Below, piece after piece: positions 2,351 to 57,376 of a DNA stretch of 64,000 nt (position 1 is its first letter; every line of letters starts with the position of its first letter). The notes under the pieces were generated by a model. The model was given only the letters and a program-made list of their open reading frames with translations. It ran no database searches and had not been told where the DNA came from. The DNA lies in assembly GCA_964304625.1 (NCBI GenBank), contig OZ199839.1, positions 9,792,671-9,856,670 on the forward strand. The letters are read 5' to 3'. A program made the position numbers and the translations under genes. This DNA is from Kudoa neothunni (Eukaryota > Animalia > Cnidaria).

Positions 2351-5328
2351 ATGAAGACAAACATGGTCTCATTTACCTTGATTGTTGCATTATTATGTAA
2401 TAAATTAAAATTCTAGATTCTTTTTAAACCATTTTAGGCATTAAGGAAGTTTTTGTGCTTGGAGCCACAGGTGCGGCTACCGAACCTGCCAAAGTTCTCA
2501 CCTATCGCATAGCAGACAGTGACAAAGTACATCTGACTTTATCTGGAACAACTTATGCTACATCAGAAAAAAAATGCCTTATAAGGAAAGAAAAGGAAGA
2601 TACGGTTGAATTTGACCATATAAATACATGTCCTAACAATGATAATTCACATGGGACTGGGAAATGTCTTCGTGCTTGCTCTGGAGATGATATCAAATTG
2701 TCGTTTGATAAGCTATCCCCCAGAACAAAATATGTCTATGTATATTCTGGGGATGGTGCCGACGCCATAAAAGAAAAGATCACTGGTGGAGATGTGTTTG
2801 GATTGCCTATACGTATTCTTCGTTTATTATATATATATAATTGATTGAGTTTAGCGCTATTGGTGAATCCAATCATCACAATATCCATACACGATTCAAC
2901 TAAATTGAAACTTGCAACAAAAACATGCCCCAAAGTCACTTGTCCAATTTATTACAAAGGTGTCCAATACGTCGCCGGTACCACTGGTGCTACTTGCGAA
3001 GCTGAAATTACAAATACAGTTGATTTTGACGTGCTGATACCTCACTATGAAATGAAATGTAAGAATTTACCAAGCTTCTTCTACCATATGCCAAATATAT
3101 ACATGAAAAAAAACATTGACATATATAAACCCCAATACTATGTGACCTATAAAGAGGGTGACAACGCAAAGACGAAATATCTCTTAAAGTTTACAAATGC
3201 TTTCCCATCAGAAATTTGTTTTTTTAATGTAAAAGATGCAGCGGCTAGCGCACAGGGGAGTGCGAATACCTATTCATCATCGTGCGGTGGTGATGCTGGA
3301 AAAAAATGTCATGCCCCATGTGATAATGTTGAATTGGAACTAGCTACATCCAAGCCGATCGTGAAAATATTAATTCAAACTCGACATCATAGATTAGAAG
3401 TAGCAAACAATCAATACGATGGTTATGAAGAGAAAAAATTTGGTAAGATTTCAGTCAATTTTAAGTAATCATCATTGAATTTTAGCTATTGTTGAGGCTA
3501 CAAGTGCAAGCACTCTTTTAACAACACATTCTGCCACTGGAGTAACAATTAACCGATCTCTCTACAATCCAAGCAATAATGAAAATAACGTAAAATTAGC
3601 TAATTGCGTATTAAAGTACTTTCCAGCTGATATACCAAGAACAACAGTGAGATCCGCGGCAAATTGTCAAAATACTGCGTGTCAAAATGATTGTTCAGTC
3701 AGCTCCACTATTGATGGATTGACTGCAGGAAAAGCATATATATTTGAAATAGCCCCTACTACCGATTTAGATAATTATACTGGTTTTAAAGAATATTTGT
3801 TTTTCAGAACAAGTAATTTAGCAAAGTTTACAATCATTATTACAATTTATTCTCAGCTAAAGCTAGCGCGTCAAATTACGTTACTACCTCTCCAACAACA
3901 ACCGACGTAACAGCTACATTAAAGGCGATTGACGGTAATGTGGGAACAGCATCAACCGAACCAACATGTGCATATTATTTCAGTGAACAAGGAAAAGGAA
4001 CATTTGTGGAAGCAGAATGTGAAGATAGTAAACCATGCAGAGGATTTTGTAGGGACATCAAGAAATTGATAAATCTAAATCCCAAAACAAATTATGATAT
4101 TAAGGTTGTTTCAAATAAAGACTATGGAATAAAAATATTTGAAAACGTCTCAACAAGTAAAAATATGATATTAAAATCTCATTTAATCTAATTTACGTTT
4201 GATAGCTTTTTCAACCCTCACTCTATCCCACAATTTCCTCGATAAAGGATTTCGAGTTGTTGGAAGATTAACAACTGCATATACAGAAGCAATATGTCAC
4301 TATAAACTTAAAGTTAAAAATGGAACTAGTTCAAATGTAGTTTATTCCTGCCCAACAATTGCCCCTTCTCCTCCACAGGACAACCCACCCAATACTAATG
4401 CTGTTCAATCTTCCACGAATCAAAATTTAGAACAATCTAATTTGATCAGTCATATAAATTCTTACAATAATAGAGTTGCAAGGGCAAGTGGTGTAGCTGA
4501 TTTAACTCCAAGTTCATCTACGAACACTCCAACTACGATTACTCCTACTGCGACTAATCAGTCTAAGTTCCCACCGTGCAATAAACCACCTCTATGCAGC
4601 AGCATAATAATCAGCGAGGGTTACGAGGCTGATAAAGAATACCAAGTATTGGTTACAGCTGTAGACAGATCGGAAGAAATTACCATCAATATTCCCAAAA
4701 GTATAATATTTATTTATCAAACTATAGAAAGTTCTAATATATCACACACAAATAGATGCTCTCCCTGAGAATCCTGAGGAAGTAGATAAACAAATCACAG
4801 TGATTATCGAAAGAGTTGGCGATACTTTAAAAATCACATCATTGCTTCCAAAACAAAAAAATGAAAATTCATTGTGTCGATGGATATTGAAAGATATGAA
4901 CGATCCTTCTTTACCAATAGTGAAAAAGTGTGACACTGTTGGAAGTAGTAGGTGTAAACTTCCAACATGTAAATCATTCACAATTGAGCGCGTAAGCGAT
5001 ACCAGTGATTATCATTTAACGGTTATTCACTCCCAAGACCCTACAATAAAAGGCGTTGGGAGAATTAAACAAGGTAGTTAACAATAAATTATTATTATTT
5101 TAATGATCAATATAGGAGAAACTTCTAATCAATCAAAGTAAAATTGTAAAATGATAATATTAAATTTGATTTAATTTTTAGGGCGAGCACGTCAATGTAT
5201 TTTTTAATTATTTGAGTATATTTTAATGAGATACCATACATTTTAGGATAATTGGAATTATTGTTCCGATTGTTATCGTTGTAGTAGCAGTTGGATTGTA
5301 CTTTGGTTACAAGAAGAATAAATCTTAG
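2351..5328 (+). CDS. Array copy 1: 10-exon type I membrane protein (855 aa) with Cys-rich FN3-like modules; type-A signal peptide MKTNMVSFTLIVALLC
   Basis: Exons 2351-2396, 2438-2812, 2855-3442, 3486-3812, 3857-4156, 4206-4700, 4756-5073, 5116-5137, 5182-5196, 5247-5328. All introns are GT-AG, 41-55 nt. Joined CDS is 2568 nt and open. Hydrophobic N-terminus; C-terminal TM and tail MIIGIIVPIVIVVVAVGLYFGYKKNKS*. Confidence 0.9.
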
Positions 5329-10466: not shown

Positions 10467-11429
10467 AAATAATTTTCTTTAATTTGTAGTTCTTCATAAT
10501 AAAACGAGCATTTATAATTTAATAAATACTCATTTAGATATTGAGAGTGAATATACAATTTTCTACATTTAATTAATAATAAAATTAACATTTATTTTCT
10601 AATGTAATCGTTACTTAAGACTATTAAAGTCTGCACCATTAAAGGGCTGTAAACAAATTAAATGAATATTTCTTGATATTTTTATTCCAAATGACTTATA
10701 ATACTAGTAGATAAAATATTACGAATAACTTTGGTGGGCATATTTATGGAAGTGATCCTCCCGAAAGCCGAGTTGATAAATTTACAATCAAAATGTCACG
10801 AAATGACCAATGTTTCAGAGAGATGATTGGATAAAAATAAAATTTAATGGGAGCCAAAATTATCCAAGTAATAAGAGTCCTTACTGACACAAGATAATTT
10901 TTACTGTCAATATAACCCATTCCAAACGAAAGTTAAAAATTAGTTTCAATTGATTAACTACATTTTTTGCAACATATTTTCAAGAGAATAATAAAAAATG
11001 AATTAATTTTAACCCAGCTGCTACATTAAATACTCCGTTGATCTTGTTGATACAAAATCCAAAGTTTTCTTAGACAAATTACTTTTATTAGTTGCTTTTT
11101 CATTATAACGACGGAGAGCCATTAGTTCAACTTTTTATTCTAATCAGCTCCTTTTTATCCGTTTCAGCCAGATATTACATACACCATTCAAAAGAAAGTC
11201 AAATGATAATTATTCCATATCTTTATTTAACATTAATTTTTCGTAAAGGATTACATAAAATACATGCTGAGGTAGTCTTGTAAAGATTGTAAAATTCTAA
11301 TAACTTAAATAATCCGAATAATCACAATTTTCAGATAGTATTATCTCTTTCATGAATAGTTATTGTTTATTGATACTATAAAATAAATAATCTGTTATAT
11401 ATTCTATCTTAATATAAATTAAGACAAAC

Positions 11430-14386
11430 ATGGTCTCATTTAGCTTGCTTGTGGCATTATTTTGTAATAAATTAAAATTCTCGCTTCTTTTTAAACCATT
11501 TTAGGCATTAAGAAAGTTTTTGTGCTTGGAGCCACAGGTGCGGCTACCGAACCTGCCAAAGTTCTCACCTATCGCATAGCAGACAGTGACAAAGTACATC
11601 TGACTTTATCTGGAACAACATATGCCACATCGGGGAAAAAATGCCTTATAAGAAAGGAAAAGGAAAATGCAGTTGAATTTGGTGATATAAATACATGTAA
11701 TGATAATGATAATTCACATGGGACTGGGAAATGTCTTCGTGCTTGCTCTGGAGAAAACATTAAATTGGATTTTAATGTGTTATCACCCAAAACAAAATAT
11801 ATTTATGTATATTCTGGGGGTGAATATGCAGAAATACATAATAAGAATAATGGAGGAGATGTGTTTGGATTGTCCATTCGTAATTTTTATTAATTTGTTT
11901 TTAAAAATAATTAAATATAGCTCTCTTGGTGAATCCAATAGTCACAATTTCCACAGATGAGTCAACAAAATTGAAACTTGCAACCAAAACATGTCCTAAA
12001 GTCGCTTGTCCCATTTATTACAAAGGTGTCCAATACGCCGAAGGGTCAGTCGCAGATAACTGTATAACAGAAATTACAAATACGGTTGATTTTGATGTGC
12101 TGATACCACACTATGAAATGAAATGTATGAATTTACCAAGCTTCTTCTACAATATGCCAAATACATACATGAAAAAAAACATTGATATATATAAACCCCA
12201 ATATTACGTGACCTATAAAGAGGGGGACGACGCAACGACAAAATATCTCTTAAAGTTTACAAATGCTTTCCCATCAGAAATTTGTTTTTTTAATGTAAAA
12301 GATGCAACAACTACCACACAAGGGAGTACGAATACCTACGTATCATCATGTGGTGGTGGAGCCGGAAAAAACTGTTACGCTCCATGTAATAATGTGGAAT
12401 TGAAATTTTCTACTTCCAAACCAATATTAAAAATATTAATTAAAACTCGGCGCCATAAATTAGAAGTCGATGGAACCGACGTTGAAGGTTATGAAGAGAA
12501 CAAATTTGGTAATATTTCATTAAATTCAAGGTAATCGCCATTGAATTTTAGCTATTATTGAGCCAATAAATGCAAGCACCCTTTTAACAGCACATTCTGC
12601 TACAGGAATAACACTCAATCCGTCACCGTACAATCCCACACGAGACGATAGTGTGAAATTTACTACTTGTACTTTAAAACATTTTCCAGCCGATAAGCTG
12701 AGACCCAGCGATGGGACTGCTGCTCAGTGCGCAAACGTGCCATGTGGAACTGACTGTTCACAGAACTCTGTCCTTAGTCAGCTGGACGCAGGTAAAGCAT
12801 ATATAATTGAAATAGCTCCATCAACAACATTAAATACTCCCAACAACTTTAAAGAATATTTATTCTTTAGAACAGGTAATGTAACAAAGTGTATTACAAT
12901 TATGATTATTTAAATTTATTTTCAGCTAAAGCTAGCGCGTCAAATTACGTTACTACCATTCCCACAACGACCGACGTAACAGCTACATTAAAGGCAGTTG
13001 ACGGTGATGTGGAAAATAAACCGGCTGAACCAACATGTGAATATTACATCAGTAAAGCAGGTAAAAACATGTTTGTAGAAGCAGAATGTGGAGATAGTTA
13101 TCCATGCAGAGGATTTTGTAAGGACACCAAGAAATTGATAAATTTAAGGCTTAAAACAAATTATGATATCAAAGTTGTTTCAAATAAAGATTATGGAATA
13201 AAAATATTTGAAAACGTCTCAACAAGTAAAAATATGATATCGAAATCACATTTAATTTACGTTTAATAGCTTTTTCAACCCTCACTCTATCCCACAATTT
13301 TCTCGATAAAGGATTTCGAGTTGTTGGAAGATTAATAACTGCATATCCAGAAGCAATATGTCACTATAAACTTAAAGTTAAAAATGGAACTAGTTCAGAT
13401 GTAGTTTATTCCTGCCCAACAATTGCTCCTTCTCCTCCACAAGCCAACCCACCCAATACTAATGCTGTTCAATCTTCCACGAATCAAAATTTAGAACAAT
13501 CTAATTTGATCAGTCATATAAATTCTTCCAATAATAGAGTAGCAAGAGCGAGTGGCGCAGCTGTTATAACTCCAAATTCATCCGCCACCATTCCAACTAC
13601 GATTACTCCTACTGCGACTAATCAATCTAAGTTTCCACCATGCAATAAACCACCTCTATGCAACAACATAATAATCAGCGAGGGTTACGAGGCTGATAAA
13701 GAATACCAATTATTGGTTACAGCTGTGGACAGATCGGAAGAAATTACCATCAATATTCCCAAAAGTACAATATTTATTTACCAAATTATAAAAAGTTCTA
13801 ATATATCACTCACAAATAGATGCTCTCCCTGAGAATCCTGAGGAAGTAGATAAACAAATCACAGTGATTATCGAAAGAGCTGGCGATACTTTAAAAATCA
13901 CATCATTGCTTCCAAAACAAAAAAATGAAAATTCATTGTGTCGATGGATATTGAAAGATATGAACGATCCTTCTTTACCAATAGTGAAAAAATGTGACAC
14001 TGTTGGAAGTAGTAGGTGTGCACTTCCAACATGTAAATCATTCACAATTGAGGGCGTAAGCGATACCAGTGATTATCATTTAACGGTTATTCACTCCCAA
14101 GACCCTACAATAAAAGGCGTTGGAAGAATTAAACAAGGTAGTTAACAATAAATTATTATTATTTTAATGATCAATATAGGAGAAACTTCTAATCAATCAA
14201 AGTAAAATTGTAAAATGATAATATTAAATATGATTAATTTTTAGGGCGAGCACGTCAATGTATTTTTTAGTTATTTGAGTATATTTGAATGAGATACCAT
14301 TTAGGATAATTGGAATTATTGTTCCGATTGCTATCGTTGTAGTGGCGGCTGGATTGTACTTTGGTTACAAGAAGAACAAATCATAA
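11430..14386 (+). CDS. Array copy 2 (type A; first ATG mutated to ATT, starts at second ATG, MVSFSLLVALFC)
   Basis: Same splice sites and exon order as copy 1 (ORFs 11522, 11926, 12653, 12889, 13506, 13864). TM exon ends AAA TCA TAA at 14386. Confidence 0.86.
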
Positions 14387-18300: not shown

Positions 18301-18399
18301 ACTTTGCACTTTCCTGAATTAACGCACGGGTTGAATAAAAAAAAATTTTTTCAAGTGTTTCACCATAACGTTTAAAAAGCCACAGTTTGGCCACCCCTG
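15334..18399. mobile_element. Non-autonomous hAT (Charlie/Buster-like) element carrying a nested piggyBac
   Basis: TIRs CAGAGGTGGCCAAACT / AGTTTGGCCACCCCTG and a perfect 8-bp TSD TACTATAT (15326-15333, 18400-18407). Confidence 0.9.
15439..17505 (-). mobile_element. Internally deleted piggyBac (PGBD3-like remnants)
   Basis: TCAA|CCCTTTCACGT ... ACGCGAAAGGG|TTAA ends. Minus-strand EIEKFIGVIILMGIIRMPRYRCYW, VDEQMISFKGR and C-terminal CIKC..CFYEFH. Repeated TGTGCATTTAA.T.CACA palindromes. Confidence 0.85.
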
Positions 18400-21331: not shown

Positions 21332-24289
21332 ATGAAGACAAACATGGTCTCATTTACCTTGATTGTTGCATTATTTTGTAATAAATTAAAATTCTAGATT
21401 CTTTTTAAACCATTTTAGGCATTAAGAAAGTTTTTGTGCTTGGAGCCACAGGTGCGACTACTGAACCTGCCAAAGTTCTCACCTATCGCATAGCAGATAG
21501 TAACAAAGTACATCTGACTTTATCTGGAACAATTTATGCTACTTCGGAGAAAAAATGCCTTATAAGAAAAGAAAAGGAAGGTACGGTCGAATTTGACCAT
21601 ATAAATACATGTCCTAGCAATGATAGTACACAAGGAGGTGGAAAATGTCTTCGTGCTTGCTCTGGAGAAAACATTAAATTGGATTTTAATGTGTTATCAC
21701 CCAAAACGAAATATATTTATGTATATTCTGGGGGTGAATATGCAGAAATACATAATAAGAATAATGGAGGAGATGTGTTTGGATCGTCCATTCGTAATTT
21801 TTATTAATTTGTTTTTAAAAATAATTAAATATAGCTCTCTTGGTGAATCCAACAGTCACAATTTCTACAGACACTTCAGGGAAACTGAAACTTGCAACCA
21901 AAACATGTCCTAAAGTCGCTTGTCCCATTTATTACAAAGGTGTCCAATACGCCGTCGGTACAGCTGGTGCTACTTGTGAAGCTAATATTGAAAATACGGT
22001 TGATTATGACGTGCTGATACCTCACTATGAAATGAAATGTAAGAATTTACCAAGCTTTTTCTACCATATGCCAAATACATACATGAGAAAAAACATTGAC
22101 ATATATAAACCACAGTACTATGTTACATATAAGGAAAATGATAATGACAAGTTAAAATATCTCTTAAAGTTTACAAATGCTTTCCCATCAGAAATTTGTT
22201 TTTTTAATGTAAAAGATGCGGCGACTAGCCCTCAGCCGAGTACAAATGATTACGAATCATCATGTGGTGGTGAGGCTGGAAAAAAATGTTATGCCCCATG
22301 TGATAATGTCGAATTGGCACTTACTGCAACCAAACAGATCGTGCAAATATTAATTAAAACTAGGCATCATGAACTAGAAGTAGAAGGAGCCAATGTTGAT
22401 GGTTATGAAGAGAAAAAATTTGGTAAGGTTTCAGTCAATTTTAACTAGTTATCATTAGTATTAGCTATTGTTGAGGCTGCAAAAGCAAACACTCTTTTAA
22501 CAGCACATTCTGCTACTGGAGTTACAATTAATAGATCCCTGTATAGTCCAGGGAATAATAACGTTAAATTTACGACTTGCGATTTAAAATACTTTCCAGC
22601 TGATATACCAAGAACAACAGTGAGAACCGCGGCAAATTGTCCAAATGCTGATTGTGGAAGCGAATGCACAACCAGTTCCATTATTGGTGGATTGATTGCG
22701 GGGAAAACATATATAATTGAAATATCTCCATCTGCCTCCTTATCTAATTATAATGGCTTTAAAGAATATTTATTTTTCAGAACAAGTAAATAGACTGAAA
22801 TTTCATATTATATTATTTTTCAGCGCAAAAAGACGGGGCCGAATTCGGTACTTCTACGCCTATAACAACCGACATAACGGCTACGTTAAAGGCGATTGAC
22901 GGTAATGTGGGAACAGCATCAACCGAACCAACATGTGCATATTATTTCAGTGAACAAGGAAAAGGAACATTTGTGGAAGCAGAATGTGAAGATAGTAAAC
23001 CATGCAGAGGATTTTGTAGGGACATCAAGAAATTGATAAATCTAAATCCCAAAACAAATTATGATATTAAGGTTGTTTCAAATAAAGACTATGGAATAAA
23101 AATATTTGAAAACGTCTCAACAAGTAAAAATATGATATTAAAATCTCATTTAATCTAATTTACGTTTGATAGCTTTTTCAACCCTCACTCTATCCCACAA
23201 TTTCCTCGATAAAGGATTTCGAGTTGTTGGAAGATTAACAACTGCATATACAGAAGCAATATGTCACTATAAACTTAAAGTTAAAAATGGAACTAGTTCA
23301 AATGTAGTTTATTCCTGCCCAACAATTGCCCCTTCTCCTCCACAAGCCAACCCACCCAATACTAATGCTGTTCAATCTTCCACGAATCAAAATTTAGAAC
23401 AATCTAATTTGATAAGTCATCTAAATTCTTACAATAATAGAGTAGCAAGAGCGAGTGGTGGAGCTGATTTAACTCCAAGTTCATCTACGAACACTCCAAC
23501 TATAATTTCTCCTACCACAACAACCAAGTCTAAGTTCCCACCATGCAATAAACCACCTCTATGCAACAACATAATAATCAGCGAGGGTTACGAGGCTGAT
23601 AAAGAATACCAATTATTGGTTACAGCTGTGGACAGATCGGAAGAAATTACCATCAATATTCCCAAAAGTACAATATTTATTTACCAAATTATAAAAAGTT
23701 TTAATATATCACTCACAAATAGACACTCTCCCCGAGAATCCTGAGGAAGTAGATAAACAAATCACAGTGATTATCGAAAGAGTTGGCGATACTTTAAAAA
23801 TCACATCATTGCTTCCAAAACAAAAGAATGAAAATTCATTGTGTCGATGGATATTGAAAGATATGAACGATCCTTCTTTACCAATAGTGAAAAAATGTGA
23901 CACAGTCGGTACTAATAGGTGTAAACTTCCAACATGCAAATCATTCACAATTGATGGTGTAAGCGATACCAGTGATTATCATTTAACGGTTATTCACTCC
24001 CAAGACCCTACAATAAAAGGCGTTGGGAGAATTAAACAAGGTAGTTAACAATAAATTATTATTATTTTAATGATCAATATAGGAGAAACTTCTAATCAAT
24101 CAAAGTAAAATTGTAAAATGATAATATTAAATATGATTTACTTTTAGGGCGAGCACTTCAATGTATTATTAAATTATTTGAGTATATTTGAATGAGATAC
24201 CTTTTAGGATAATTGGAATTATTGTTCCGATTGTTATCGTTGTAGTAGCAGTTGGATTGTACTTTGGTTACAAGAAGAATAAATCCTAG
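21332..24289 (+). CDS. Array copy 3 (type A)
   Basis: ATGAAGACAAAC at 21332. Conserved GT-AG junctions; exons 4, 5 and 7 checked in frame. TM exon ends TCC TAG at 24289. Confidence 0.88.
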
Positions 24290-31446: not shown

Positions 31447-34412
31447 ATGAAGAAAAACGTGGTCTCATTTAGCTTGCTTGTTGCATTATTTTGTAATAAA
31501 TTAAAATTTTCGCATCTTTTGAACCATCCTAGGCATACAGAAGAATTTTGTGTTTGGGGTTCAAGAAGAGACTACACAGCCTGCCAAAGTTCTTACGTAC
31601 CAAATAGCAGATAGCGAGAAAGTACAACTGACTTTATCTGGAACAATTTATTCTGCCCAAGGTAAAAAATGCCTTATAAGAAAAGAAAAGGAAGGTGCAG
31701 TTGAATTTGATGATATAAATACATGTGAGGAAAATATTAGTGATCATGGAGTTGGCAAATGCCTTCGTGCTTGTACAGGTGATATCAAGTTGGCATTTGA
31801 TAAGCTTTCTCCCAGAACAAAATATGTCTATATATATGCTGGTGATTTGGCCGAAACAATTAAAACGAAGAACACTGGTGGAGATGTGTTTGGGTTGTCT
31901 ACACGTATTTTACGTAGAATTTACATATAGATTAATTGAGTTTAGCGTTATTGGTGAATCCAATAGTCACAATTTCCGTAGAGTCAACAAAATTGAAACT
32001 TGCAACTAAAACATGTCCAAAGGTTAATTGTCCTATTTATTACAATGGTGTTAAATACGCCGAAGGAGGAGCCGCAAGTAATTGTATAACTGATATTAAT
32101 AATACGGTTGATTTTGACGTGTTGATACCTTATTATGAAATGAAATGTGTAAGTTATCCAAGCTTCTTCTACCATATGCCAAATATATACATGAGAAAAA
32201 ATATTGACATATATAAACCACAATACTATGTGACCTATAAAGGTGGTGACAACGCAAAGACGAAATATCTCTTAAAGTTTACAAATGCTTTCCCATCAGA
32301 AATTTGTTTTTTTAATATAAAAGATGCAGCGACTAGCGCACCGGCAGAAACGAATAAATATGAATCATCCTGTGGTGGTGAAGCTGATAGAAAATGTTAT
32401 GCACCATGTGATAATGTTGAATTGGTGCTTACTGCATTTAAGCCGATCGCGAAAATATTAATTCAAACTCGGTATCATAGATTAGAAGTAGAGAACAATC
32501 AATATGACGGTTATGAAGAGAATAAATTTGGTAAGATTTCATTAAATTTTAAGTAATCATCACTGAATTTTAGCTGTTGTTGAGTCGGCAAGTGCAAATG
32601 CCCTTTTAACAGCACATTCTGCTACTGGAGTTACAATTAATAGATCCCTTTATAGCCCGAATGAAAACAACGGCGTAAAATTTACGGAGTGCGTTTCAAA
32701 ATACTTTCAGGCTGATGCACCAAGAACCACAGAAAGAACACCGATCAATTGCCCAAGTGAAACTTGCGGAAATGATTGTTCAGCAAGCACCACTATTGGT
32801 GGATTGACTGCAGGAAAAGCATATATAATTGAAATAGCCCCTACTACCACTATAACTAATTATGATGGTTTTAAAGAATATTTGTTTTTCAGAACTAGTA
32901 ATTTAGTAAAGTTCACAATCATTATTACAATTTATTTTCAGCTAAAGCTAGTGCGTTAAATTACATTAATACTACACCCGCAACAACCGACGTAACAGCT
33001 ACGTTAAAGGCGATTGACGGTAATGTGGGAACAGAATCCACCGAACCAACATGTTCATATTACTTCAGTGAAAAAGGAAAAGGAACATTTGTGGAAGCAG
33101 AATGTGAAGATAGTTATCCGTGCAGAGGATTTTGTAGGGACATCAAGAAATTGATAAATCTAAATCCCAAAACAAATTATGATATTAAAGTTGTTTCAAA
33201 TAAAGAGTATGGAATAAAAATATTTGAAAATGTCTCAACAAGTAAAAATATGATATTGAAATTTCATTTAATCTAATTTACGTTTGATAGCTTTTTCAAC
33301 CCTCACTCTATCCCACAATTTCCTCGATAAAGGATTTCGAGTTGTTGGAAGATTAACAACTGCATATACAGAAGCAATATGTCACTATAAACTTAAAGTT
33401 AAAAATGGAACTAGTTCAAATGTAGTTTATTCCTGCCCAACAATTGCCCCTTCTCCTCCACAAGCCAACCCACCCAATACTAATGCTGTTCAATCTTCCA
33501 CGAATCAAAATTTAGAACAATCTAATTTGATAAGTCATCTAAATTCTTACAATAATAGAGTAGCAAGAGCGAGTAGCGTAGCTGATATAACTCCAAGTTC
33601 ATCTACGAACACCCAAACTATAATTTCTCCTACCACGACAACTCAGTCTAAGTTCCCACCATGCAATAAACCACCTCTATGCAGCAGCATAATAATCAGC
33701 GAGGGTTACGAGGCTGATAAAGAATACCAATTATTGGTTACAGCTGTGGACAGATCGGAAGAAATTACTATCAATATTCCCAAAAGTACGATATTTATTT
33801 ATCAAACTATATAAAGTTCTAATATAACACACACAAATAGATGCTCTCCCTGAGAATCCTGAGGAAGTAGATAAACAAATCACAGTGATTATCGAAAGAG
33901 CTGGCGATACTTTAAAAATCACATCATTGCTTCCAAAAGAAAAGAATGAAAATTCATTGTGTCGATGGATATTGAAAGATATGAACGATCCTTCTTTACC
34001 AATAGTGAAAAAATGTGACACTGTTGGAAGTAGTAGGTGTGCACTTCCAACATGTAAATCATTCACAATTGAGCGCGTAAGCGATACCAGTGATTATCAT
34101 TTAACGGTTATTCACTCCCAAGACCCTACAATAAAAGGCGTTGGGAGAATTAAACAAGGTAGTTAACAATAAATTATTATTATTTTAATGATCAATATAG
34201 GAGAAACTTCTAATCAATCAAAGTAAAATTGTAAAATGATAATATTAAATTTGATTTATTTGTAGGGCGAGTACGTCAATGTATTTTTTAATTATTTGAG
34301 TATATTTTAATGAGATACCATACATTTTAGGATAATTGGAATTATTGTTCCGATTGTTATCGTTGTAGTAGCAGTCGGATTGTACTTTGGTTACAAGAAG
34401 AATAAATCTTAG
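31447..34412 (+). CDS. Array copy 4 (type A; second ATG mutated to GTG, MKKNVVSFSLLVALFC)
   Basis: ORFs 31550, 31936, 33025, 33284 and 33885 match the exons of copy 1. Splice sites conserved; stop TAG at 34410-34412. Confidence 0.88.
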
Positions 34413-35887: not shown

Positions 35888-38845
35888 ATGAGAGCAATAT
35901 TGGCTTTGTTAGTATTGTTTATAACTTTGTTTAGTATTTTTCTACTTTTAAACCCCTTATTATATTTCAATTAGATAGGGTTAAGTATTCTGTTAGTGCA
36001 GCTGAAGTTACGACTACCGAACCTGCAAAAATTCTTAATTACAACATAGTAGCTAGCAATAAAGTGCGTCTGACTTTATCTGGAACAATTTATGCTGAAT
36101 CAGATAAAAAATGCCTAATAAGAAAAGAAAAGGAAGGTACAGTTGAATTTGACCAGATCAATACATGTACTAGCAGTGATACAACTCATGGAAGTGGCAA
36201 ATGTCTTCGTGCTTGTTCTGGAAATATCGAATTGGCATTTAATATCTTATCACCCAGAACAAAATATGTCTATGTATTTTCGGGTACTGATGCTGGCACA
36301 ATAAAAGATAAAAATAATGGCGGAGATGTGTTTGGGTTGTCTACACGTATTTTATGTAGACTTTACATATAAATTAATTGAGTTTAGCGTTATTGGTGAA
36401 TCCAATAGTCACAATTACCACAGATGAGTCAACAAAGTTGAAACTTGCAACAAAAACATGTCCCAAAGTCGCTTGTCCTATTTATTACAAAGGAACCAGA
36501 TACGCCGAAGGGCAAGCAGCAAGCACTTGCACAGCTGAAATTGAAAATAAAGTCGATTTTGACGTGTTAATACCTTATTATGAAATGAAATGTGTAAATT
36601 ATCCAAGCTTTTTCTACCATATGCCAAATATATACATGAGAAAAAACATTGACATATATAAACCCCAATATTATGTGACCTATAAAGAGGGTGACAACGC
36701 AAAAACGAAATATCTCTTAAAGTTTACAAATGCTTTCCCATCAGAAATTTGTTTTTTTAATGTGAAAGACGCAGCAACTACTTCACAGGGGAGCTCAAAT
36801 ACCTATTCATCATCGTGCGGTGGTGATGCTGGAAAAGAATGTTATGCCCCATGTGACAATGTTGAACTGGAACTAGCCTCATCCAAGCCGATCGTGAAAA
36901 TATTAATTCAAACTAGACATCATAAATTTGGAGTGGATGGGACTAGCGATGATGGTTATGAAGATAAAAAATTTGGTAAGATTTCAGTAAATATATAATA
37001 ATGATCATTGATATTAGCTATCGTCGAGACTACACGTGCAAGCGCCCTCTTGACATCGCCATTAGCTGATGGTATAACTCTAAATCAGGCGCTGTATAAT
37101 CCAACTGACACTAATGTTCTAAAATTTACCAATTGTGTCTTAAAATACTTTCCAGCTGATAACCTCAGGCCCAATCAAGGCACTCCTGCTCATTGTACAA
37201 ATCAGGTATGTGGAAATGAATGTTCACAGGATTCTGCCATTAATCAGCTTGGAGCAGGAAAGGCATACATAATTGAAATAGCTCCTACTACCACTATAAC
37301 TAATTATGTTGACTTTAAAGAATATTTGTTTTTCAGAACAAGTAATTATACTGATGTTTCATATTATATATTTTTTAGCTCAAAAACAGGGTTCAGACTT
37401 CGTTGCTACCACTCCCACAACAACCGACGTAACAGCTACATTAAAGGCGATTGACGGTAATGTGGGAACAGAATCCACCGAACCAACATGTTCATATTAC
37501 TTCAGTGAAAAAGGAAAAGGAACATTTGTGGAAGCAGAATGTGAAGATAGTTATCCATGCAGAGGATTTTGTAAGGAACCCAAGAAATTGATAAATTTAA
37601 GTCTTAAAACAAATTATGATATTAAAGTTGTTTCAAATAAAGAGTATGGAATAAAAATATTTGAAAATGTCTCAACAAGTAAAAATATGATATTGAAATC
37701 TCATTTAATTTACGGTTGATAGTTTTTTCAACCCTCACCCTATCCCACAAGTTTCTCGATAAAGGATTTCGAGTTGTTGGAAGATTAACAACTGCATATC
37801 CAGAAGCAATATGTCATTATAAACTTAAAGTTAAAAATGGAATTAGTTCGGATGTAGTTTATTCCTGCCCAACAATTGCCCCTTCTCCTCCACAGGACAA
37901 CCCACCCAATACTAATGCTGTTCAATCTTCCACGAATCAAAATTTAGAACAATCTAATTTGATAAGTCATCTAAATTCTTACAATAATAGAGTAGCAAGA
38001 GCGAGTGGCGTAGCTGATATAACTCCAAGTTCATCTACGAACACTCCAACTATAATTTCTCCTACCACAACAACCAAGTCTAAGTTCCCACCATGCAATA
38101 AACCACCTCTATGCAGCAGCATAATAATCAGCGAGGGTTACGAGGCTGATAAAGAATACCAATTATTGGTTACAGCTGTGGACAGATCGGAAGAAATTAC
38201 TATCAATATTCCCAAAAGTACGATATTTATTTATCAAACTATATAAAGTTCTAATATAACACACACAAATAGATGCTCTCCCTGAGAATCCTGAGGAAGT
38301 AGATAAACAAATCACAGTGATTATCGAAAGAGTTGGCGATACTTTAAAAATCACATCATTGCTTCCAAAACAAAAGAATGAAAATTCATTGTGTCGATGG
38401 ATATTGAAAGATATGAACGATCCTTCTTTACCAATAGTGAAAAAGTGTGACACTGTTGGAAGTAGTAGGTGTAAACTTCCAACATGTAAATCATTCACAA
38501 TTGAGCGCGTAAGCGATACCAGTGATTATCATTTAACGGTTATTCACTCCCAAGACCCTACAATAAAAGGCGTTGGGAGAATTAAACAAGGTAGTTAACA
38601 ATAAATTATTATTATTTTAATGATCAATATAGGAGAAACTTCTAATCAATCAAAGTAAAATTGTAAAATGATAATATTAAATTTGATTTAATTTTTAGGG
38701 CGAGCACGTCAATGTATTTTTTAATTATTTGAGTATATTTTAATGAGATACCATACATTTTAGGATAATTGGAATTATTGTTCCGATTGTTATCGTTGTA
38801 GTAGCAGTTGGATTGTACTTTGGTTACAAGAAGAATAAATCTTAG
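35888..38845 (+). CDS. Array copy 5 (type-B signal peptide MRAILALLVLFITLF)
   Basis: Exon 1 35888-35933 (46 nt) and a phase-1 41-nt intron 35934-35974, the same geometry as type A. An alternative 35929-35978 intron is also in frame. Remaining exons homologous; stop at 38845. Confidence 0.86.
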
Positions 38846-45651: not shown

Positions 45652-48620
45652 ATGAAGACAAACATGGTCTCATTTAGCTTGCTTGTGGCATTATTTTGTA
45701 ATAAATTAAAATTCTCGCTTCTTTTTAAACCATTGTAGGCATTAAGAAAGTTTTTGTGCTTGAAGCCACAGGTGCGGCTACCGAACCTGCCAAAGTTCTC
45801 ACCTATCGCATAGCAGACGGTGACAATGTACATCTGACTTTATCTGGAACAACATATGCCACATCGGGGAAAAAATGCCTTATAAGAAAGGAAAAGGAAG
45901 GTACAGTTGAATTTGACCAGATCAATACATGTCCTAGCAGTGATAGTGCACATGGAGGTGGAAAATGTCTTCGGCTTTGTTCTGGAGATGATATCAAACT
46001 GGGATTTAATACTTTTTCACCTAGAACAAGATATGTATATATATATTCTGGGAATGATTATGAGGCCATGAAAGATAAAGATAATGGAGGAGATGTGTTT
46101 GGATTGTCTATTCGTATATTGCATTAAATGTTTTCGAAATATAATTTGAATATAGCACTCTTGGTTAATCCAATAGTCACAATTTCTACAGACACTTCAG
46201 GAAAATTGAACCTTCTAACAAAAACATGCCCAAAAGTTGCTTGTCCCATTTATTACAAGGGTGTTAAATACGCCGAAGGGCTGATCGCAGCTGACTGTGT
46301 AACTGCAATTACAAATACAGTTGATTTTGATGTATTAATTCCTCACTATGAGATGAAATGTTCAAATTATCCAAGCTTTTTCTACCATATGCCAAATACA
46401 TACATGAGAAAAAACATTGCTACATATAAACCACAGTACTATGTTACATATAAGGAAAATGATAATGACAAGTTAAAATATCTTCTTAAGTTTACAAATG
46501 CTTTCCCATCAGAAATTTGTTTTTTTAATGTAAAAGATGCAGCGACTAACGCACCGACAAACACGAATAAATATGAATCATCGTGTGGCGGTGAGGCTGG
46601 AAAAAAATGTTATGCACCCTGCAATAATGTTGAATTGGCAGTTACTGCAACCAAACAGATCGTGAAAATATTAATTAAAACTAGGCACCATCAATTAGAA
46701 GTAGATGGAGCCTACGTTGATGGTTATGAAGAGAAAAAATTTGGTAATATTTCTTTAAATTTTAACTAGTTATCATTAGTATTAGCTATTGTTGAGGCCG
46801 CAAAAGCAAACGCTCTTTTAACGGCACATTCTGCTACTGGAGTTACAATTAATAGATCCCTTTATAGTCCGGATGGAAATAACGGCGTAAAATTTACGGA
46901 TTGCGTTTTAAAATACTTTCCGGCTGATGTACCAAGATCCTCCACAGGAACACCAATAAATTGCCCAGATGCTACCTGTGGAAACGAATGCACAGTCAGT
47001 CCCACTATTGGTGCTTTGGCCGCAGGAAAAGCATACATATTTGAAATAGCTCCTAGTACCGCTTTAAATAATTATGAGAATTTTAAAGAATATTTGTTTT
47101 TCAGAACTAGTAATTTAGTAAAGTTTACAATCATTATTTAAATTTATTTTCAGCTAAAGTTAGCGCGTCAAATTACGTTACTACCATTCCCACAACGACC
47201 GACGTAACAGCTACATTAAAGGCAGTTGACGGTGATGTGGAAAATAAACCGGCTGAACCAACATGTGAATATTACATCAGTAAAGCAGGTAAAAACATGT
47301 TTGTAGAAGCAGAATGTGGAGATAGTTATCCATGCAGAGGATTTTGTAAGGACACCAAGAAATTGATAAATTTAAGGCTTAAAACAAATTATGATATCAA
47401 AGTTGTTTCAAATAAAGATTATGGAATAAAAATATTTGAAAACGTCTCAACAAGTAAAAATATGATATCGAAATCACATTTAATTTACGGTTGATAGTTT
47501 TTTCAACCCTCACTCTATCCCACAATTTCCTCGATAAAGGATTTCGAGTTGTTGGAAGATTAATAACTGCATATCCAGAAGCAATATGTCACTATAAACT
47601 TAAAGTTAAAAATGGAACCAGTTCAGATGTAGTTCATTCCTGCCCAACAGTTGTCCTTTCTCCTCCACCGGCCAACCCACCCAATACTAATGCTGTTCAA
47701 TCTTCCACGAATCAAAATTTAGAACAATCTAATTTGATCAGTCATATAAATTCTTACAATAATAGAGTTGCAAGGGCAAGTGGTGTAGCTGATTTAACTC
47801 CAAGTTCATCTACGAACACTCCAACTACGATTACTCCTACTGCGACTAATCAGTCTAAGTTCCCACCGTGCAATAAACCACCTCTATGCAGCAGCATAAT
47901 AATCAGCGAGGGTTACGAGGCTGATAAAGAATACCAATTATTGGTTACAGCTGTAGACAGATCGGAAGAAATTACCATCAATATTCCCAAAAGTACGATA
48001 TTTATTTATCAAACTATATAAAGTTCTAATATATCACACACAAATAGATGCTCTCCCTGAGAATCCTGAGGAAGTAGATAAACAAATCACAGTGATTATC
48101 GAAAGAGTTGGCGATACTTTAAAAATCACATCATTGCTTCCAAAAGAAAAGAATGAAAATTCATTGTGTCGATGGATATTGAAAGATATGAACGATCCTT
48201 CTTTACCAATAGTGAAAAAATGTGACACAGTCGGTACTAATAGGTGTAAACTTCCAACATGTAAATCATTCACAATTGATGGTGTAAGCGATACCAGTGA
48301 TTATCATTTAACGGTTATTCACTCCCAAGACCCTACAATAAAAGGCGTTGGGAGAATTAAACAAGGTAGTTAACAATAAATTATTATTATTTTAATGATC
48401 AATATAGGAGAAACTTCTAATCAATCAAAGTAAAATTGTAAAATGATAATATTAAATTTGATTTAATTTTTAGGGCGAGCACGTCAATGTATTTTTTAAT
48501 TATTTGAGTATATTTTAATGAGATACCATACATTTTAGGATAATTGGAATTATTGTTCCGATTGTTATCGTTGTAGTAGCAGTCGGATTGTACTTTGGTT
48601 ACAAGAAGAATAAATCTTAG
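45652..48620 (+). CDS. Array copy 6 (type A)
   Basis: ATG at 45652; ORFs 45756, 46128, 47237, 47491, 48092; conserved splice sites; TM exon stop at 48620. Confidence 0.88.
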
Positions 48621-51600
48621 GAATCGATCTAAACACCAGCTTATTAGTCTTAATAAAACAATATTATTATTTCTTAAAGATTTTGAATTTTAGTATTCAA
48701 TATAATTCAATGTTTTTTTAATAATAAAATGATGTAAAGTCTATGGCATATTATAATTTAATCAACCTCAGAATCATCCCAGATATATAGTTTTATTCAA
48801 TATTTGCCGTCATACTAATTTCTTAATTAAACCCAATAAGTAAAAATAAATATTTTTTAAAATTTTAAAAATTCCCATCAAATACATTAAATCAAAAATT
48901 TTTGTCCTGTTTACAAAATTTTGACAAATAAATTTGAGACCGTAATTTTCGACGTTTATTTTCGAAAAATTCGGCGCTTAAATAAAAAGGTGTGCAATCG
49001 TGCAAAACTCAAAATGTTCCTAGAGAATATATATATATTTATTTAAATATTAATTATTTAGTTTTAAATTAAAATATAATATTGAAAATATTTTTCATTA
49101 TTCACTTGTGAGATTGGTCCTATCAATTGTGATAAATGATAATTGTATACACATCAAATTTTGGTATATTTCTGAAAAAATAGAATATTTTAATTTGGTT
49201 GATTAATAACTTAATTCTATCTATAATATCACTCTCAGGAGAAGAAAATGAAATAGCTTACGTTATAATTTTTCATTTATATTCGTATCAAGAAAATTTG
49301 AATTATCATTTGGATCCACGTCTATTATTTTCACATCTCTTTACATCAACATTCACTTTAACATTGTTTTTTGTATGAAAATTCTCTAGAAATTATGTAT
49401 GATTTATGCTTGTTTCCGATAATTTTAAAATTAAAATATCAATAAATCTTTGTATCAATTAAATTTTTTTTATTTTAATACAAAATATTAAGTGCTTAAA
49501 TTATTGAATATTTAATAGCTACCTCAAATATTTGTAACGTCTCATTTCTTGATTTAAAAAAGTGTAACTGCTGATTTATAAAAAACGTCATTTAATGAAA
49601 ACTAACATAATAGAATTGGAATGTAAGAAATTTATCAAAAGTTGATTTAATTTTATCTAAACTCCGTAAATTTAAATAATTTTAATTAGGCATGAATCCA
49701 ATGCAAACAGGTCATTATTACCCCTAAATTTTTTGGATAATAATCTTTTTGAATAAAAAGTTATGAATAAATTACAATAAAATCATGATAATTCTTTCAT
49801 TAATCGTAGTATCACTGATATTAAGTGTGAGTAAAAAATTTAGTTATATCTTGGCTAAGATAAAAAAATAGAGAATCTAAGTAAAGATACCTAATATTAA
49901 TTTAGTAAAATTAGTCATATCCATATAATTATAAATGTCTTCAATAAATTAGATTTTTATTCATGAAAAGAACGTTATTTTTATCTTGAATAGTTATTGT
50001 TTATTCATCGCATAAAAATATAATCAGATTTATTCATTATTTCATAACAATGAGAGCAATATTGGCTTTGTTAGTATTGTTTATAACTTTGTTTAGTATT
50101 TTTCTACTTTTAAAACCCTTATTATATTTCAGTTAGATAGGGTTAAGTATTCTGTTAGTGCAGCTGAAGTTACGACTACCGAACCTGCAAAAATTCTTAA
50201 TTACAACATAGTAGCTAGCAATAAAGTGCGTCTGACTTTATCTGGAACAATTTATGCTGAATCAGATAAAAAATGCCTAATAAGAAAAGAAAAGGAAGGT
50301 ACAGTTGAATTTGACCAGATCAATACATGTGATGGAAGTGATAGTGATCATGGAACTGGGAAATGTCTTCGTGCTTGTTCTGGAAATATCGAATTGGCAT
50401 TTAATATCTTATCACCCAGAACAAAATATGTCTATGTGTTTTCGGATAATGATGCTGCCACAATGAAAGAGAAAAATAATGGCGGAGATGTGTTTGGGTT
50501 GTCTACACGTATTTTACGTAGAATTTATATATTAAATTAATTGCGTTTAGCGTTGTTGGTGAATCCAACAGTCACAATATCCTTACACGATTCAATTAAA
50601 TTGAAACTTGCAATTAAAACAAGTCCAAAGGTGAATTGTCCTATTTATTACAAGGGTGTCCAATATGCAGTCGGTACCACTAGTGGTACTTGTGAAACTG
50701 ATATTAATAATACGGTTGATTTTGACGTGTTAATACCTTATTATGAAATGAAATGTGTAAGTTATCCAAGCTTCTTCTACCATATGCCAAATACATACAT
50801 GAAAAAAAACATTGATATATATAAACCACAATACTATGTGACCTATAAAGAGGGTGATGACGCAAAGACAAAATATCTCCTAAAATTTACAAATTCATTT
50901 CCATCAGAGATTTGTCTTTTTAATGTGAAAGATGCAGCGACTAGCGCAGGCACGAATAAATATGAATCATCGTGTGGCGGTGAGGTCGGAAAAAAATGTT
51001 ATGCACCATGTGATAATGTTGAATTGGCGCTTGCTACATCCAAGCCGATCGTGAAAATATTAATTCAAACTAGATACCATAAATTTGGAGTGGATGAGAC
51101 TAGCGATGATGGTTATGAAGAGAACAAATTTGGTAAGGTTTCAGTCAATTTTAACTAGTTATCATTAGTATTAGCTATTGTTGAGGCTGAAAAAGAAAAC
51201 ACTCTTTTAACAGCACATTCTTCTACTGGAGTTACAATTAATAGATCCCTGTATAATCCAGGGAATAATAATGTTAAATTCACGAATTGTGCTTTAAAAT
51301 ACTTTCCAGCTGATGTACCAAGATCCTCCGCGGGAACATCAATCAATTGCTCAGATGTTGCATGTGGAAGCGAATGCACAGCCAGTGCCACTATTGGTGC
51401 TTCCATTGCAGGAAAAGCACATATAATTGAAATAACTTCTACTACCCCTATAACTAATTATCCTGAATTTAAAGAATATTTGTTTTTCAGAACAAGTAAT
51501 CAGACTGATATTTCATAGTATATAATTATTTTAGCCCCAAAACAAGGTTCAGATTTCGTTACTACCACTCCCACAACAACCGACGTAACAGCTACATTAA

Positions 51601-54600
51601 AGGCAGTTGACGGTAATGTGGGTACAGCATCCACCGAGCCTACATGTGCATATTACTTGAGTGAACAAGGAAAAGGAACATTTGTGGAAGCAGAATGTGA
51701 AGATAGTAAACCATGCAGAGGATTTTGTAGGGACATCAAGAAATTGATAAATCTAAATCCCAAAACAAATTATGATATTAAGGTCGTTTCAAATAAAGAG
51801 TATGGAATAAAAATATTTGAAAATGTCTCAACGAGTAAAAATATGACATTGCCATTTCATTTAATTTACGGTTGATAGTTTTTTCAACCCTCACTCTATC
51901 CCACAATTTCCTCGATAAAGGATTTCGAGTTGTTGGAAGATTAATAACTGCATATCCAGAAGCAATATGTCACTATAAACTTAAAGTTAAAAATGGAACC
52001 AGTTCAGATGTAGTTCATTCCTGCCCAACAATTGCCCCTTCTCCTCCACAAGCCAACCCACCCAATACTAATGCTGTTCAATCTTCCACGAATCAAAATT
52101 TAGAACAATCTAATTTGATCAGTCATATAAATTCTTACAATAATAGAGTAGCAAGAGCGAGTGGCGTAGCTGTTATAACTCCAAATTCATCCGCCACCAT
52201 TCCAACTACGATTACTCCTACTGCGACTAATCAATCTAAGTTTCCACCATGCAATAAACCACCTCTATGCAACAACATAATAATCAGCGAGGGTTACGAG
52301 GCTGATAAAGAATACCAATTATTGGTTACAGCTGTGGACAGATCGGAAGAAATTACCATCAATATTCCCAAAAGTACAATATTTATTTACCAAATTATAA
52401 AAAGTTCTAATATATCACTCACAAATAGATGCTCTCCCTGAGAATCCTGAGGAAGTAGATAAACAAATCACAGTGATTATCGAAAGAGCTGGCGATACTT
52501 TAAAAATCACATCATTGCTTCCAAAACAAAAAAATGAAAATTCATTGTGTCGATGGATATTGAAAGATATGAACGATCCTTCTTTACCAATAGTGAAAAA
52601 ATGTGACACAGTCGGTACTAATAGGTGTAAACTTCCAACATGTAAATCATTCACAATTGATGGTGTAAGCGATACCAGTGATTATCATTTAACGGTTATT
52701 CACTCCCAAGACCCTACAATAAAAGGCGTTGGGAGAATTAAACAAGGTAGTTAACAATAAATTATTATTATTTTAATGATCAATATAGGAGAAACTTCTA
52801 ATCAATCAAAGTAAAATTGTAAAATGATAATATTAAATTTGATTTAATTTTTAGGGCGAGCACGTCAATGTATTTTTTAATTATTTGAGTATATTTTAAT
52901 GAGATACCATACATTTTAGGATAATTGGAATTATTGTTCCGATTGTTATCGTTGTAGTAGCAGTCGGATTGTACTTTGGTTACAAGAAGAATAAATCTTA
53001 GGAATCGATCTAAACACCAGCTTATTAGTCTTAATAAAACAATATTATTATTTCTTAAAGATTTTGAATTTTAGTATTCAATATAATTCAATGTTTTTTT
53101 AATAATAAAATGATGTAAAGTCTATGGCATATTATAATTTAATCAACCTCAGAATCATCCCAGATATATAGTTTTATTCAATATTTGCCGTCATACTAAT
53201 TTCTTAATTAAACCCAATAAGTAAAAATAAATATTTTTTAAAATTTTAAAAATTCCCATCAAATACATTAAATCAAAAATTTTTGTCCTGTTTACAAAAT
53301 TTTGACAAATAAATTTGAGACCGTAATTTTCGACGTTTATTTTCGAAAAATTCGGCGCTTAAATAAAAAGGTGTGCAATCGTGCAAAACTCAAAATGTTC
53401 CTAGAGAATATATATATATTTATTTAAATATTAATTATTTAGTTTTAAATTAAAATATAATATTGAAAATATTTTTCATTATTCACTTGTGAGATTGGTC
53501 CTATCAATTGTGATAAATGATAATTGTATACACATCAAATTTTGGTATATTTCTGAAAAAATAGAATATTTTAATTTGGTTGATTAATAACTTAATTCTA
53601 TCTATAATATCACTCTCAGGAGAAGAAAATGAAATAGCTTACGTTATAATTTTTCATTTATATTCGTATCAAGAAAATTTGAATTATCATTTGGATCCAC
53701 GTCTATTATTTTCACATCTCTTTACATCAACATTCACTTTAACATTGTTTTTTGTATGAAAATTCTCTAGAAATTATGTATGATTTATGCTTGTTTCCGA
53801 TAATTTTAAAATTAAAATATCAATAAATCTTTGTATCAATTAAATTTTTTTTATTTTAATACAAAATATTAAGTGCTTAAATTATTGAATATTTAATAGC
53901 TACCTCAAATATTTGTAACGTCTCATTTCTTGATTTAAAAAAGTGTAACTGCTGATTTATAAAAAACGTCATTTAATGAAAACTAACATAATAGAATTGG
54001 AATGTAAGAAATTTATCAAAAGTTGATTTAATTTTATCTAAACTCCGTAAATTTAAATAATTTTAATTAGGCATGAATCCAATGCAAACAGGTCATTATT
54101 ACCCCTAAATTTTTTGGATAATAATCTTTTTGAATAAAAAGTTATGAATAAATTACAATAAAATCATGATAATTCTTTCATTAATCGTAGTATCACTGAT
54201 ATTAAGTGTGAGTAAAAAATTTAGTTATATCTTGGCTAAGATAAAAAAATAGAGAATCTAAGTAAAGATACCTAATATTAATTTAGTAAAATTAGTCATA
54301 TCCATATAATTATAAATGTCTTCAATAAATTAGATTTTTATTCATGAAAAGAACGTTATTTTTATCTTGAATAGTTATTGTTTATTCATCGCATAAAAAT
54401 ATAATCAGATTTATTCATTATTTCATAACAATGAGAGCAATATTGGCTTTGTTAGTATTGTTTATAACTTTGTTTAGTATTTTTCTACTTTTAAAACCCT
54501 TATTATATTTCAGTTAGATAGGGTTAAGTATTCTGTTAGTGCAGCTGAAGTTACGACTACCGAACCTGCAAAAATTCTTAATTACAACATAGTAGCTAGC

Positions 54601-56990: not shown

Positions 56991-57376
56991 TGTTGGAAGT
57001 AGTAGGTGTGCACTTCCAACATGTAAATCATTCACAATTGAGGGCGTAAGCGATACCAGTGATTATCATTTAACGGTTATTCACTCCCAAGACCCTACAA
57101 TAAAAGGCGTTGGAAGAATTAAACAAGGTAGTTAACAATAAATTATTATTATTTTAATGATCAATATAGGAGAAACTTCTAATCAATCAAAGTAAAATTG
57201 TAAAATGATAATATTAAATATGATTAATTTTTAGGGCGAGCACGTCAATGTATTTTTTAGTTATTTGAGTATATTTGAATGAGATACCATTTAGGATAAT
57301 TGGAATTATTGTTCCGATTGCTATCGTTGTAGTGGCGGCTGGATTGTACTTTGGTTACAAGAAGAACAAATCATAA
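54431..57376 (+). CDS. Array copy 8 (type-B 5' end; 3' end and downstream flank match copy 2)
   Basis: ATG at 54431. Exon 7 GSSRCAL...EGV and the TM variant PIAIVVVAAG with TAA stop are as in copy 2. Confidence 0.86.

Follow-up and report, generated by a model that had tools for sequence, protein, structure and literature searches.

A large family of predicted membrane-anchored proteins with tandem four-cysteine FN3-like modules in Kudoa neothunni

The gene at positions 2351-5328 (+) of the 64,000-nucleotide stretch of Kudoa neothunni DNA analysed here (GCA_964304625.1, contig OZ199839.1, positions 9,792,671 to 9,856,670; hereafter, the window) is predicted to encode a membrane-anchored rod of seven FN3-like modules with two predicted disulfides each. 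A sequence-only reading of this region had recognised a repeated four-cysteine module resembling FN3. Beyond this, the gene was found to extend to a signal exon (2351-2396) and transmembrane (TM) exons (to 5328), the first half of exon 3 was found to be a seventh four-cysteine sandwich with a different spacing (C24, C29, C47, C68), and the gene proved to be a member of a very large family.

Results

Structure of the gene

The gene comprises ten exons, the joined frame of which is open over 855 codons and encodes, in order, a signal peptide, an ectodomain, one TM helix, and the tail KKNKS (ca. 5 residues). Each of the nine introns is bounded by GT-AG and measures 41-55 nt, exons 2-7 are in phase 1 at both ends, and the exon structure is identical across the copies in the window (8/8). 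The splicing of the ten exons is deduced from the sequence together with its conservation. Three RNA runs of the host species, which contained no parasite RNA, yielded zero reads and have no bearing on expression. The features of the gene are as follows.

2351..2396 (+): exon 1, start codon and type A signal peptide (ATG at 2351, hydrophobic core KD 2.75, phase-1 GT donor)
2438..2812 (+): exon 2, module 1, four-Cys FN3-like (Cys codons at 2575, 2629, 2665, and 2677; variable C2-C3 loop; LSPRTKY)
2855..3442 (+): exon 3, two sandwiches, 3a and 3b (AlphaFold pLDDT 85, Foldseek, VIA, Cys co-loss)
Cys at 2926, 2941, 2995, and 3058 (+): module 3a, atypical, with putative pairs 1-3 and 2-4
Cys at 3217, 3283, 3307, and 3319 (+): module 3b, standard four-Cys, without a tyrosine corner
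3486..3812 (+): exon 4, four-Cys module carrying LTAGKAY; no other C2-C4 loop varies as much
3857..4156 (+): exon 5, the most FN3-like by sequence, with a conserved C2-C4 loop (LNPKTNY)
4206..4700 (+): exon 6, four-Cys module with a 75-aa Ser/Thr/Pro-rich (mucin-like) insert as the C2-C3 loop (insert 4352-4576)
4472-4486 (+): the exon-6 [IV]-[AS]-R motif, in this copy RVARA
4756..5073 (+): exon 7, four-Cys module nearest the membrane (VSDTSDY), with an invariant C-x-W in its strand C
5116..5196 (+): micro-exons 8 (5116-5137) and 9 (5182-5196), sequence-predicted juxtamembrane linker (GT-AG sites kept in 8/8 copies)
5247..5328 (+): exon 10, TM helix, basic tail KKNKS, and stop (TM helix and a tail of 3-6 residues in 38/38 paralogs)

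Because exon 3 carries two modules, the 28 cysteines of the ectodomain (7 × 4) amount to four in each of the seven modules. The C-terminal tails of the 38 paralogs examined are mostly basic and contained no ITAM or ITIM.

The repeated four-cysteine module

The repeated module was borne out, as every motif and all four cysteine loops quoted in the sequence-only reading were located. The tyrosine-corner-like motifs lie at 2713-2733 (LSPRTKY), 3719-3739 (LTAGKAY), 4075-4095 (LNPKTNY), 4622-4642 (YEADKEY), and 4992-5012 (VSDTSDY). Across paralogs, the cysteines follow the spacing C1-x(15-27; medians 16-21)-C2-x(4-14; 24-83 in exon 6)-C3-x(3-5)-C4, and each is 93-100% conserved among 39-55 paralogous exons. 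The pattern is rare by chance, being found in 0.3-0.7% of shuffled exons.

Mutual similarity of the modules, which the same reading implied, was observed for part of them. Profile-profile comparison gave probabilities of 90% for exons 6 and 7, 79% for module 3b and exon 7, 79% for exons 4 and 5, 23% for exons 5 and 7, and 21% for exons 2 and 6, all above column-shuffled controls, while module 3a matched no other module. In distant homologs, single modules matched several module profiles at once. Since the six standard modules share profile matches, they probably represent one anciently diverged lineage.

FN3-like fold of the modules

The proposed FN3-like beta-sandwich is supported by profile matches and ESM features of exon 5 and by the structural model of exon 3. 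Searches were performed exon by exon using alignments of up to ca. 55 paralogs, and exons 2 and 3 were folded by AlphaFold. The exon-5 profile matched titin FN3 in the PDB (E 2.6e-5), with Dscam, fibronectin, tenascin, and contactin next in rank and strands E-G making up most of the matched part; in the same PDB sequence search, the exon-7 profile gave weak matches and the exon-2 profile none. A length-limited word search with exon 3 gave no match. ESM features of exon 5 were nearest to fn3 clusters (0.93), and those of exon 7 were weak. Pfam fn3 matched 38 of 150 members of exons 3, 4, and 5 at E up to 0.5 (best E 3.2e-5); no member of these exons reached the PF00041 gathering threshold, the best paralog scoring 24.5 vs 25 bits, and the window's own exons gave no meaningful Pfam match and none to fn3.

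With a 69-row alignment, exon 3 was modelled at pLDDT 85 as two tandem seven-strand sandwiches. The best Foldseek matches of this model were tandem-FN3 cytokine receptors (E 6e-4, probability about 1, 7-10% identity), and its VIA Z-scores were 6-7.3, with matches mixing FN3 and other Ig-like folds. As these structural Z-scores are below 8, module 3a may have either an FN3 or another Ig-like fold. Exon 2, modelled from seven rows, reached a pLDDT of 47.5 and displayed the same strand pattern, a hint at most. The seven-strand A-B-E / C'-C-F-G topology was seen in exon 3 and, at low confidence, in exon 2, the sheets being read from strand order and matches rather than from coordinates.

The features that mark FN3 domains include a strand-B Trp, a strand-C Tyr, and the tyrosine corner (PMC9546547). 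Both the EF-loop Leu and the strand-F Tyr of the corner are present in exons 2, 4, and 5 (L73 and Y79 invariant in exon 5), exons 6 and 7 have only the Tyr (Y85 invariant), and module 3b has no corner. A strand-B Trp is found in no module consensus, and the C1 Cys opens strand C where FN3 has Tyr. The modules are FN3-like, not formal members of the Pfam family, and are probably FN3-derived.

Disulfides and the C2-C4 loop

In the standard modules, complete double losses of cysteines affected either C2 and C3 or C1 and C4, with no other pattern. C2 and C3 were lost twice in exon 2 (in neighbouring paralogs) and once in exon 7, i.e., in three sequences representing two independent events, and C1 and C4 were lost in two distant homologs, in which the alignment is less certain. 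This co-loss, not the model coordinates, is the basis for assigning the pairs, and it suggests nested pairing of C1 with C4 and C2 with C3 in the six standard modules. The predicted C1-C4 bond would join the start of strand C to the approach of strand E, replacing the missing Trp/Tyr pair, and the C2-C3 bond would close the loop between strands C' and E. Of the distant homologs, eight retain no module-3a cysteines other than C29 and C68, and one retains none but C24 and C47. In copies 7 and 8 of the window (50551-51132 and 54932-55513), Ser takes the place of the first Cys of this module, leaving one cysteine unpaired.

Disulfide-bearing FN3 domains are known in cytokine receptors and tissue factor. 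In these proteins the disulfide joins the C'-E strand pair, whereas the disulfides of the Kudoa modules are predicted to be nested, and to our knowledge no FN3 domain carries such a nested pattern. The nested arrangement looks different from the disulfides of known FN3 domains. The earlier statement that canonical FN3 lacks such disulfides nevertheless overstated the novelty, since the FN3 domains of cytokine receptors, tissue factor, and Hydractinia Alr carry disulfides (PMC9546547 for Alr).

The disulfide-stapled loop had also been proposed to be presented by the sandwich. The loop is not a variable display loop throughout, as it varies only in exons 2, 4, 6, and 7 and is conserved in exon 5. 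Loop entropy was 2.7, 3.1, and 2.2 bits in exons 2, 4, and 7, respectively, while the values for exon 5 were 0.96 and 0.48 bits, placing its loop among the most conserved parts of the module. The exon-6 loop of the paralogs is an insert of 24-83 residues, roughly 35-60% of which are Ser/Thr/Pro. Although the insert is otherwise free, 46 of 48 distinct sequences preserve a motif in it, [IV]-[AS]-R, which occurs in 6% of shuffles. It is mostly followed by Ala or Ser and is preceded by Lys or Arg in 27/46. A family-wide furin R-x-x-R site was ruled out, as the P4 Arg is present in only 12/46. The motif may be a candidate processing (cleavage) site; because it lies inside both predicted disulfides, a cut at the exon-6 Arg would leave two linked chains rather than shed part of the protein.

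Tandem copies in the window

Eight copies of the gene, each with an intact frame, stand in tandem in the window, with DNA-transposon remnants between them. Copies 2 to 8 and the remnants are located as follows.

11418..14386 (+): copy 2, ATT in place of the first ATG (an in-frame Met at codon 5 may rescue it)
21332..24289 (+): copy 3, intact
31447..34412 (+): copy 4, intact
35888..38845 (+): copy 5, intact, type B signal peptide
45652..48620 (+): copy 6, intact
50050..53001 (+): copy 7, intact, type B signal peptide
54431..57376 (+): copy 8, the same as copy 7 up to within exon 7
7429-9120 (+): broken piggyBac-like transposase between copies 1 and 2 (PF13843, E 1.9e-12)
26358-27715 (-): hAT/SPIN-type remnant with a Spin-doc zinc finger, in two frames (PF18658)
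40011-41604 (-) and 42212-43220 (+): Tigger/pogo-type (DDE_1, CENP-B_N) and Merlin/IS1595-type transposase fragments, respectively

Contigs of the source sample cover every bin of the array, their depth being ca. 7 over the unique 5' parts and 46 over the homogenised 3' part; because of this support, an assembly artefact is unlikely. Two unrelated-looking types of signal peptide were observed, MRAIL... and MKTNM..., which separate the copies starting at 35888, 50050, and 54431 from those starting at 2351, 11418, 21332, 31447, and 45652. The type A copies have ca. 900 bp more upstream sequence in common, from 1385. The regions 11541-20992 and 54554-64000 form a segmental duplication of 9.5 kb with 94.5% identity, and the last 600 bp of the window match the upstream region of a further copy.

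Size and evolution of the family

At least 189 distinct exon-3 loci, counted by hand in the union of best-150 match lists, are distributed over all three chromosomes, and the match lists of exons 5 and 7 raise the family to more than 200 members. The actual number may be higher, as first-look candidates numbered 445-463 (exons 3 and 5) and 318 (exon 7). Stops were found in only 1-2 of the best 150 matches per exon, although such lists favour intact copies.

The window copies share 62-81% of amino acid positions over exons 2-5, a figure that reaches 92-96% over exons 6-7. dS declines in parallel from 0.75 to 0.065, and intron 7 is 100% identical; the constant 3' end, therefore, consists of homogenised DNA. 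Since the uniformity extends to synonymous sites and introns, conversion history accounts for the gradient no less than selection does. Identical tracts longer than expected by chance were found in 26 of 28 copy pairs, and the nearest neighbour of a copy changes exon by exon. In a quick tree, the window copies and two neighbouring copies formed one clade (SH-aLRT 98).

The dN/dS values of 0.26-0.49 per exon indicate purifying selection. No positive selection was found per exon or in the loops, whose pN/pS values were mostly 0.2-0.9; the one loop value above 1 rests on a pS of 0.04. In exons 2 and 4, loop pN/pS was higher than that of the rest of the module, yet below 1, and conversion would bias site-level models. 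As read from these comparisons, the diversity of the family is generated by local duplication and gene conversion under purifying selection.

In-frame, stop-free introns allow natural read-through over two or three modules at several loci (L017:1309-2634, L050, L047, L042, L044, L056, L053, L054, and L037), and retention of such introns would give longer linkers.

K. neothunni is a parasite of yellowfin tuna muscle. Among the many sequenced samples labelled as one species, the DNA occurs in a single one, as would be expected of a parasite within its host. For the K. neothunni genome, in which 46% is repeats and introns are 49 bp long, 5,316 proteins were annotated after repeat masking, parasite RNA reads being too few (PMC12239612). 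The text of that paper does not mention such a family, and the words fibronectin and transmembrane have 0 occurrences in it. Judging from the methods described there, the family may have been hidden from annotation by repeat masking.

Relatives in other samples

A profile search of 1.84 billion representatives matched 18 proteins, all of which were singletons. Relatives were found on contigs of SRR31175926 (five paralogs, 17-23% GC), ERZ28624939 (four), SRR33849685, SRR33529766, and ERZ795007; the module order is preserved in them, with exon 6 or other exons diverged or absent in some. These relatives probably belong to other myxozoans present in fish samples. Among the 1.84 billion representatives, no free-living cnidarian and no named protein was matched, at least by exon 3. 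The module had been called lineage-specific, which applies only above the species level, as relatives at 17-40% identity and with the same exon order occur in other samples.

One distant relative (L074, SRR31175926) has four-Cys modules that are more numerous than seven and differently ordered. At L068:1699-2300 (ERZ28624939), two modules resembling exon 7 come after exon 5, and the one next to exon 5 has only C1 and C4. A SNF5 gene beside another relative (L071:1942-7201) is 44% identical to the single copy in the present genome (G000:C3:1355653-1362258). In both genomes SNF5 lies within ca. 6 kb of a family member, on opposite sides, which may be due to chance given the hundreds of copies.

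Comparison with known systems

With the FN3 family (PF00041; titin, fibronectin, tenascin, and Dscam) the Kudoa modules have in common the seven-strand pattern, the Leu/Tyr corner, phase 1-1 exon modules, and weak sequence matches, but they differ in having four conserved Cys, an enlarged C'-E loop, no strand-B Trp, and Cys in place of the first strand-C Tyr. Class I/II cytokine receptors and tissue factor (IL7R, IL2RG, TSLPR, and TF) are the best Foldseek matches and also carry tandem disulfide-bearing FN3 pairs. Unlike these receptors, the Kudoa protein has no WSXWS and no cytoplasmic signalling domain, and its cysteines are not in strands A and B. Neither mark of class I cytokine receptors, WSXWS or the A/B-strand C-x(9-10)-C-x-W, is present in the 855-aa model, the C-x-W in exon 7 being located in strand C.

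In the insulin receptor (FnIII-2) and in cleaved receptor phosphatases, an FN3 domain close to the membrane likewise carries a long disordered insert that includes a basic site, and the chains stay joined after cleavage. The Kudoa motif is, in contrast, monobasic in most members, and the likeness is an analogy for which the sequences give no sign of homology. The first FN3 domain of NDNF/Nord (PF10179) was weakly matched by 8 of 51 exon-2 members from C3/C4 to strand G (best E 7.9e-4); this match is below the cut-off (19.9 vs 27.3 bits), covers only the generic E-F-G part, and concerns a secreted protein, so that it is a lead only.

The Hydractinia Alr proteins (PMC9546547) resemble the Kudoa family in being cnidarian, multigene, and single-pass, with a domain per exon and unusual disulfides in an FN3-like fold. 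By description, the seven FN3-like modules and the tails of 3-6 residues set the Kudoa proteins apart from Alr. Giardia VSPs and the VSP-like proteins of Sphaerospora molnari (bioRxiv 10.64898/2026.02.11.705288) likewise form a large family with a signal peptide, a Cys-containing ectodomain, and one TM helix, and the short conserved basic tail and the variable outer part on a constant anchor are further features in common. The Kudoa proteins, however, contain 3.2-3.4% Cys, have no CXXC repeats, and adopt an FN3-like fold, and their family is far larger than the 18 VSPs of S. molnari. VSPs are defined by at least 5-10% Cys and six or more CXC/CXXC, whereas the Kudoa cysteines are spaced x3-x5. 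As in variant surface antigens, the family is large and predicted to be single-pass, with variable distal parts, constant proximal parts, and mosaic copies. No description of a myxozoan FN3 family was found in the literature searched, most subscription papers lying outside its scope, and the four-Cys FN3 family is apparently undescribed.

Discussion

We propose, at about even chances of being right, that the family forms a polymorphic surface coat of the parasite at the host interface. Each protein would be a type I membrane glycoprotein in which seven FN3/Ig-like sandwiches form a rod, every phase-1 exon supplying one sandwich except exon 3, which supplies two; a single TM helix without a signalling tail would anchor the rod. 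The C2-C3 loop would be free to vary in the outer modules 2 and 4, and that of module 6 would bear the mucin-like insert. The resulting coat would be protease-resistant. Its proteins would come from hundreds of paralogs that tandem duplication and gene conversion have reshuffled, and their differing outer modules on a uniform stalk would shield the membrane or blunt antibody recognition. The combination of a signal peptide, a TM helix, and a short tail, the FN3-like fold, the 28 Cys, the at least 189 copies, and the mosaic identity gradient argue for such a coat. Against it, positive selection was not seen, the uniform 3' end owes at least as much to conversion as to selection, no expression-site or switching structure was seen, and the fish stage resides inside muscle fibres, where antibody pressure may be low.

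Part of the same evidence could be explained in other ways. Tandem FN3 rods typically form the ectodomains of adhesion molecules and receptors, and cytokine receptors gave the best structural matches; the paralogs might be adhesins, host-ligand-binding proteins, or decoys that bind fish or annelid surface or matrix molecules, with the conserved loops of exons 3b and 5 as the binding face. The conservation of these two loops even in distant homologs and the purifying selection throughout are consistent with this. Nevertheless, matches at 7-10% identity with Z below 8 speak for the fold only, there is no signalling tail, hundreds of copies exceed the needs of adhesion, and the loop conservation may be purely structural, and we consider this explanation unlikely. 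It is less likely again that the proteins act structurally or between parasites, either as a scaffold of the plasmodial membrane or spore valve or in Alr-like homophilic self-recognition, the copies serving dosage or identity. Cnidarians offer a precedent in exon-per-domain, disulfide-rich Ig/FN3 families with a single TM helix (PMC9546547), and the constant stalk, TM helix, and tail are homogenised, but a pure dosage role would not keep the outer modules at 50-80% identity. A largely neutral expansion, in which duplication in a transposon-rich genome multiplied a small founding family and left most copies redundant or silent, would account for the transposon remnants between copies, the high repeat content (PMC12239612), and the recent segmental duplications. 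The scarcity of stops, even in match lists that favour intact copies, dN/dS well below 1, and the occurrence of several paralogs in two other samples make it very improbable.

The surface-coat proposal can be carried further, tentatively and with the expectation that it would more probably fail than hold in full. In Kudoa and related marine myxozoans, several hundred nested-disulfide FN3 genes, possibly adding 4-8% to the annotated proteome, would constitute an antigenic-variation or decoy system in which few genes are expressed at once, copies are reshuffled by conversion, and the products are processed at Arg to a disulfide-linked two-chain coat. If true, the system would provide the first variant surface coat to be defined in a parasitic cnidarian and made from an animal domain.

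Myxozoan genomes have been described as drastically reduced. With about 200, perhaps up to 450, mostly intact copies, the present family would be among the largest gene families of the parasite. The modules add a variant of FN3 whose Trp/Tyr core pair seems to have given way to a cystine. Myxozoans damage farmed and wild fish, and the family is a concrete candidate for the molecular basis of myxozoan host interaction and antigenic variation; its constant membrane-proximal modules would be natural diagnostic or vaccine antigens.
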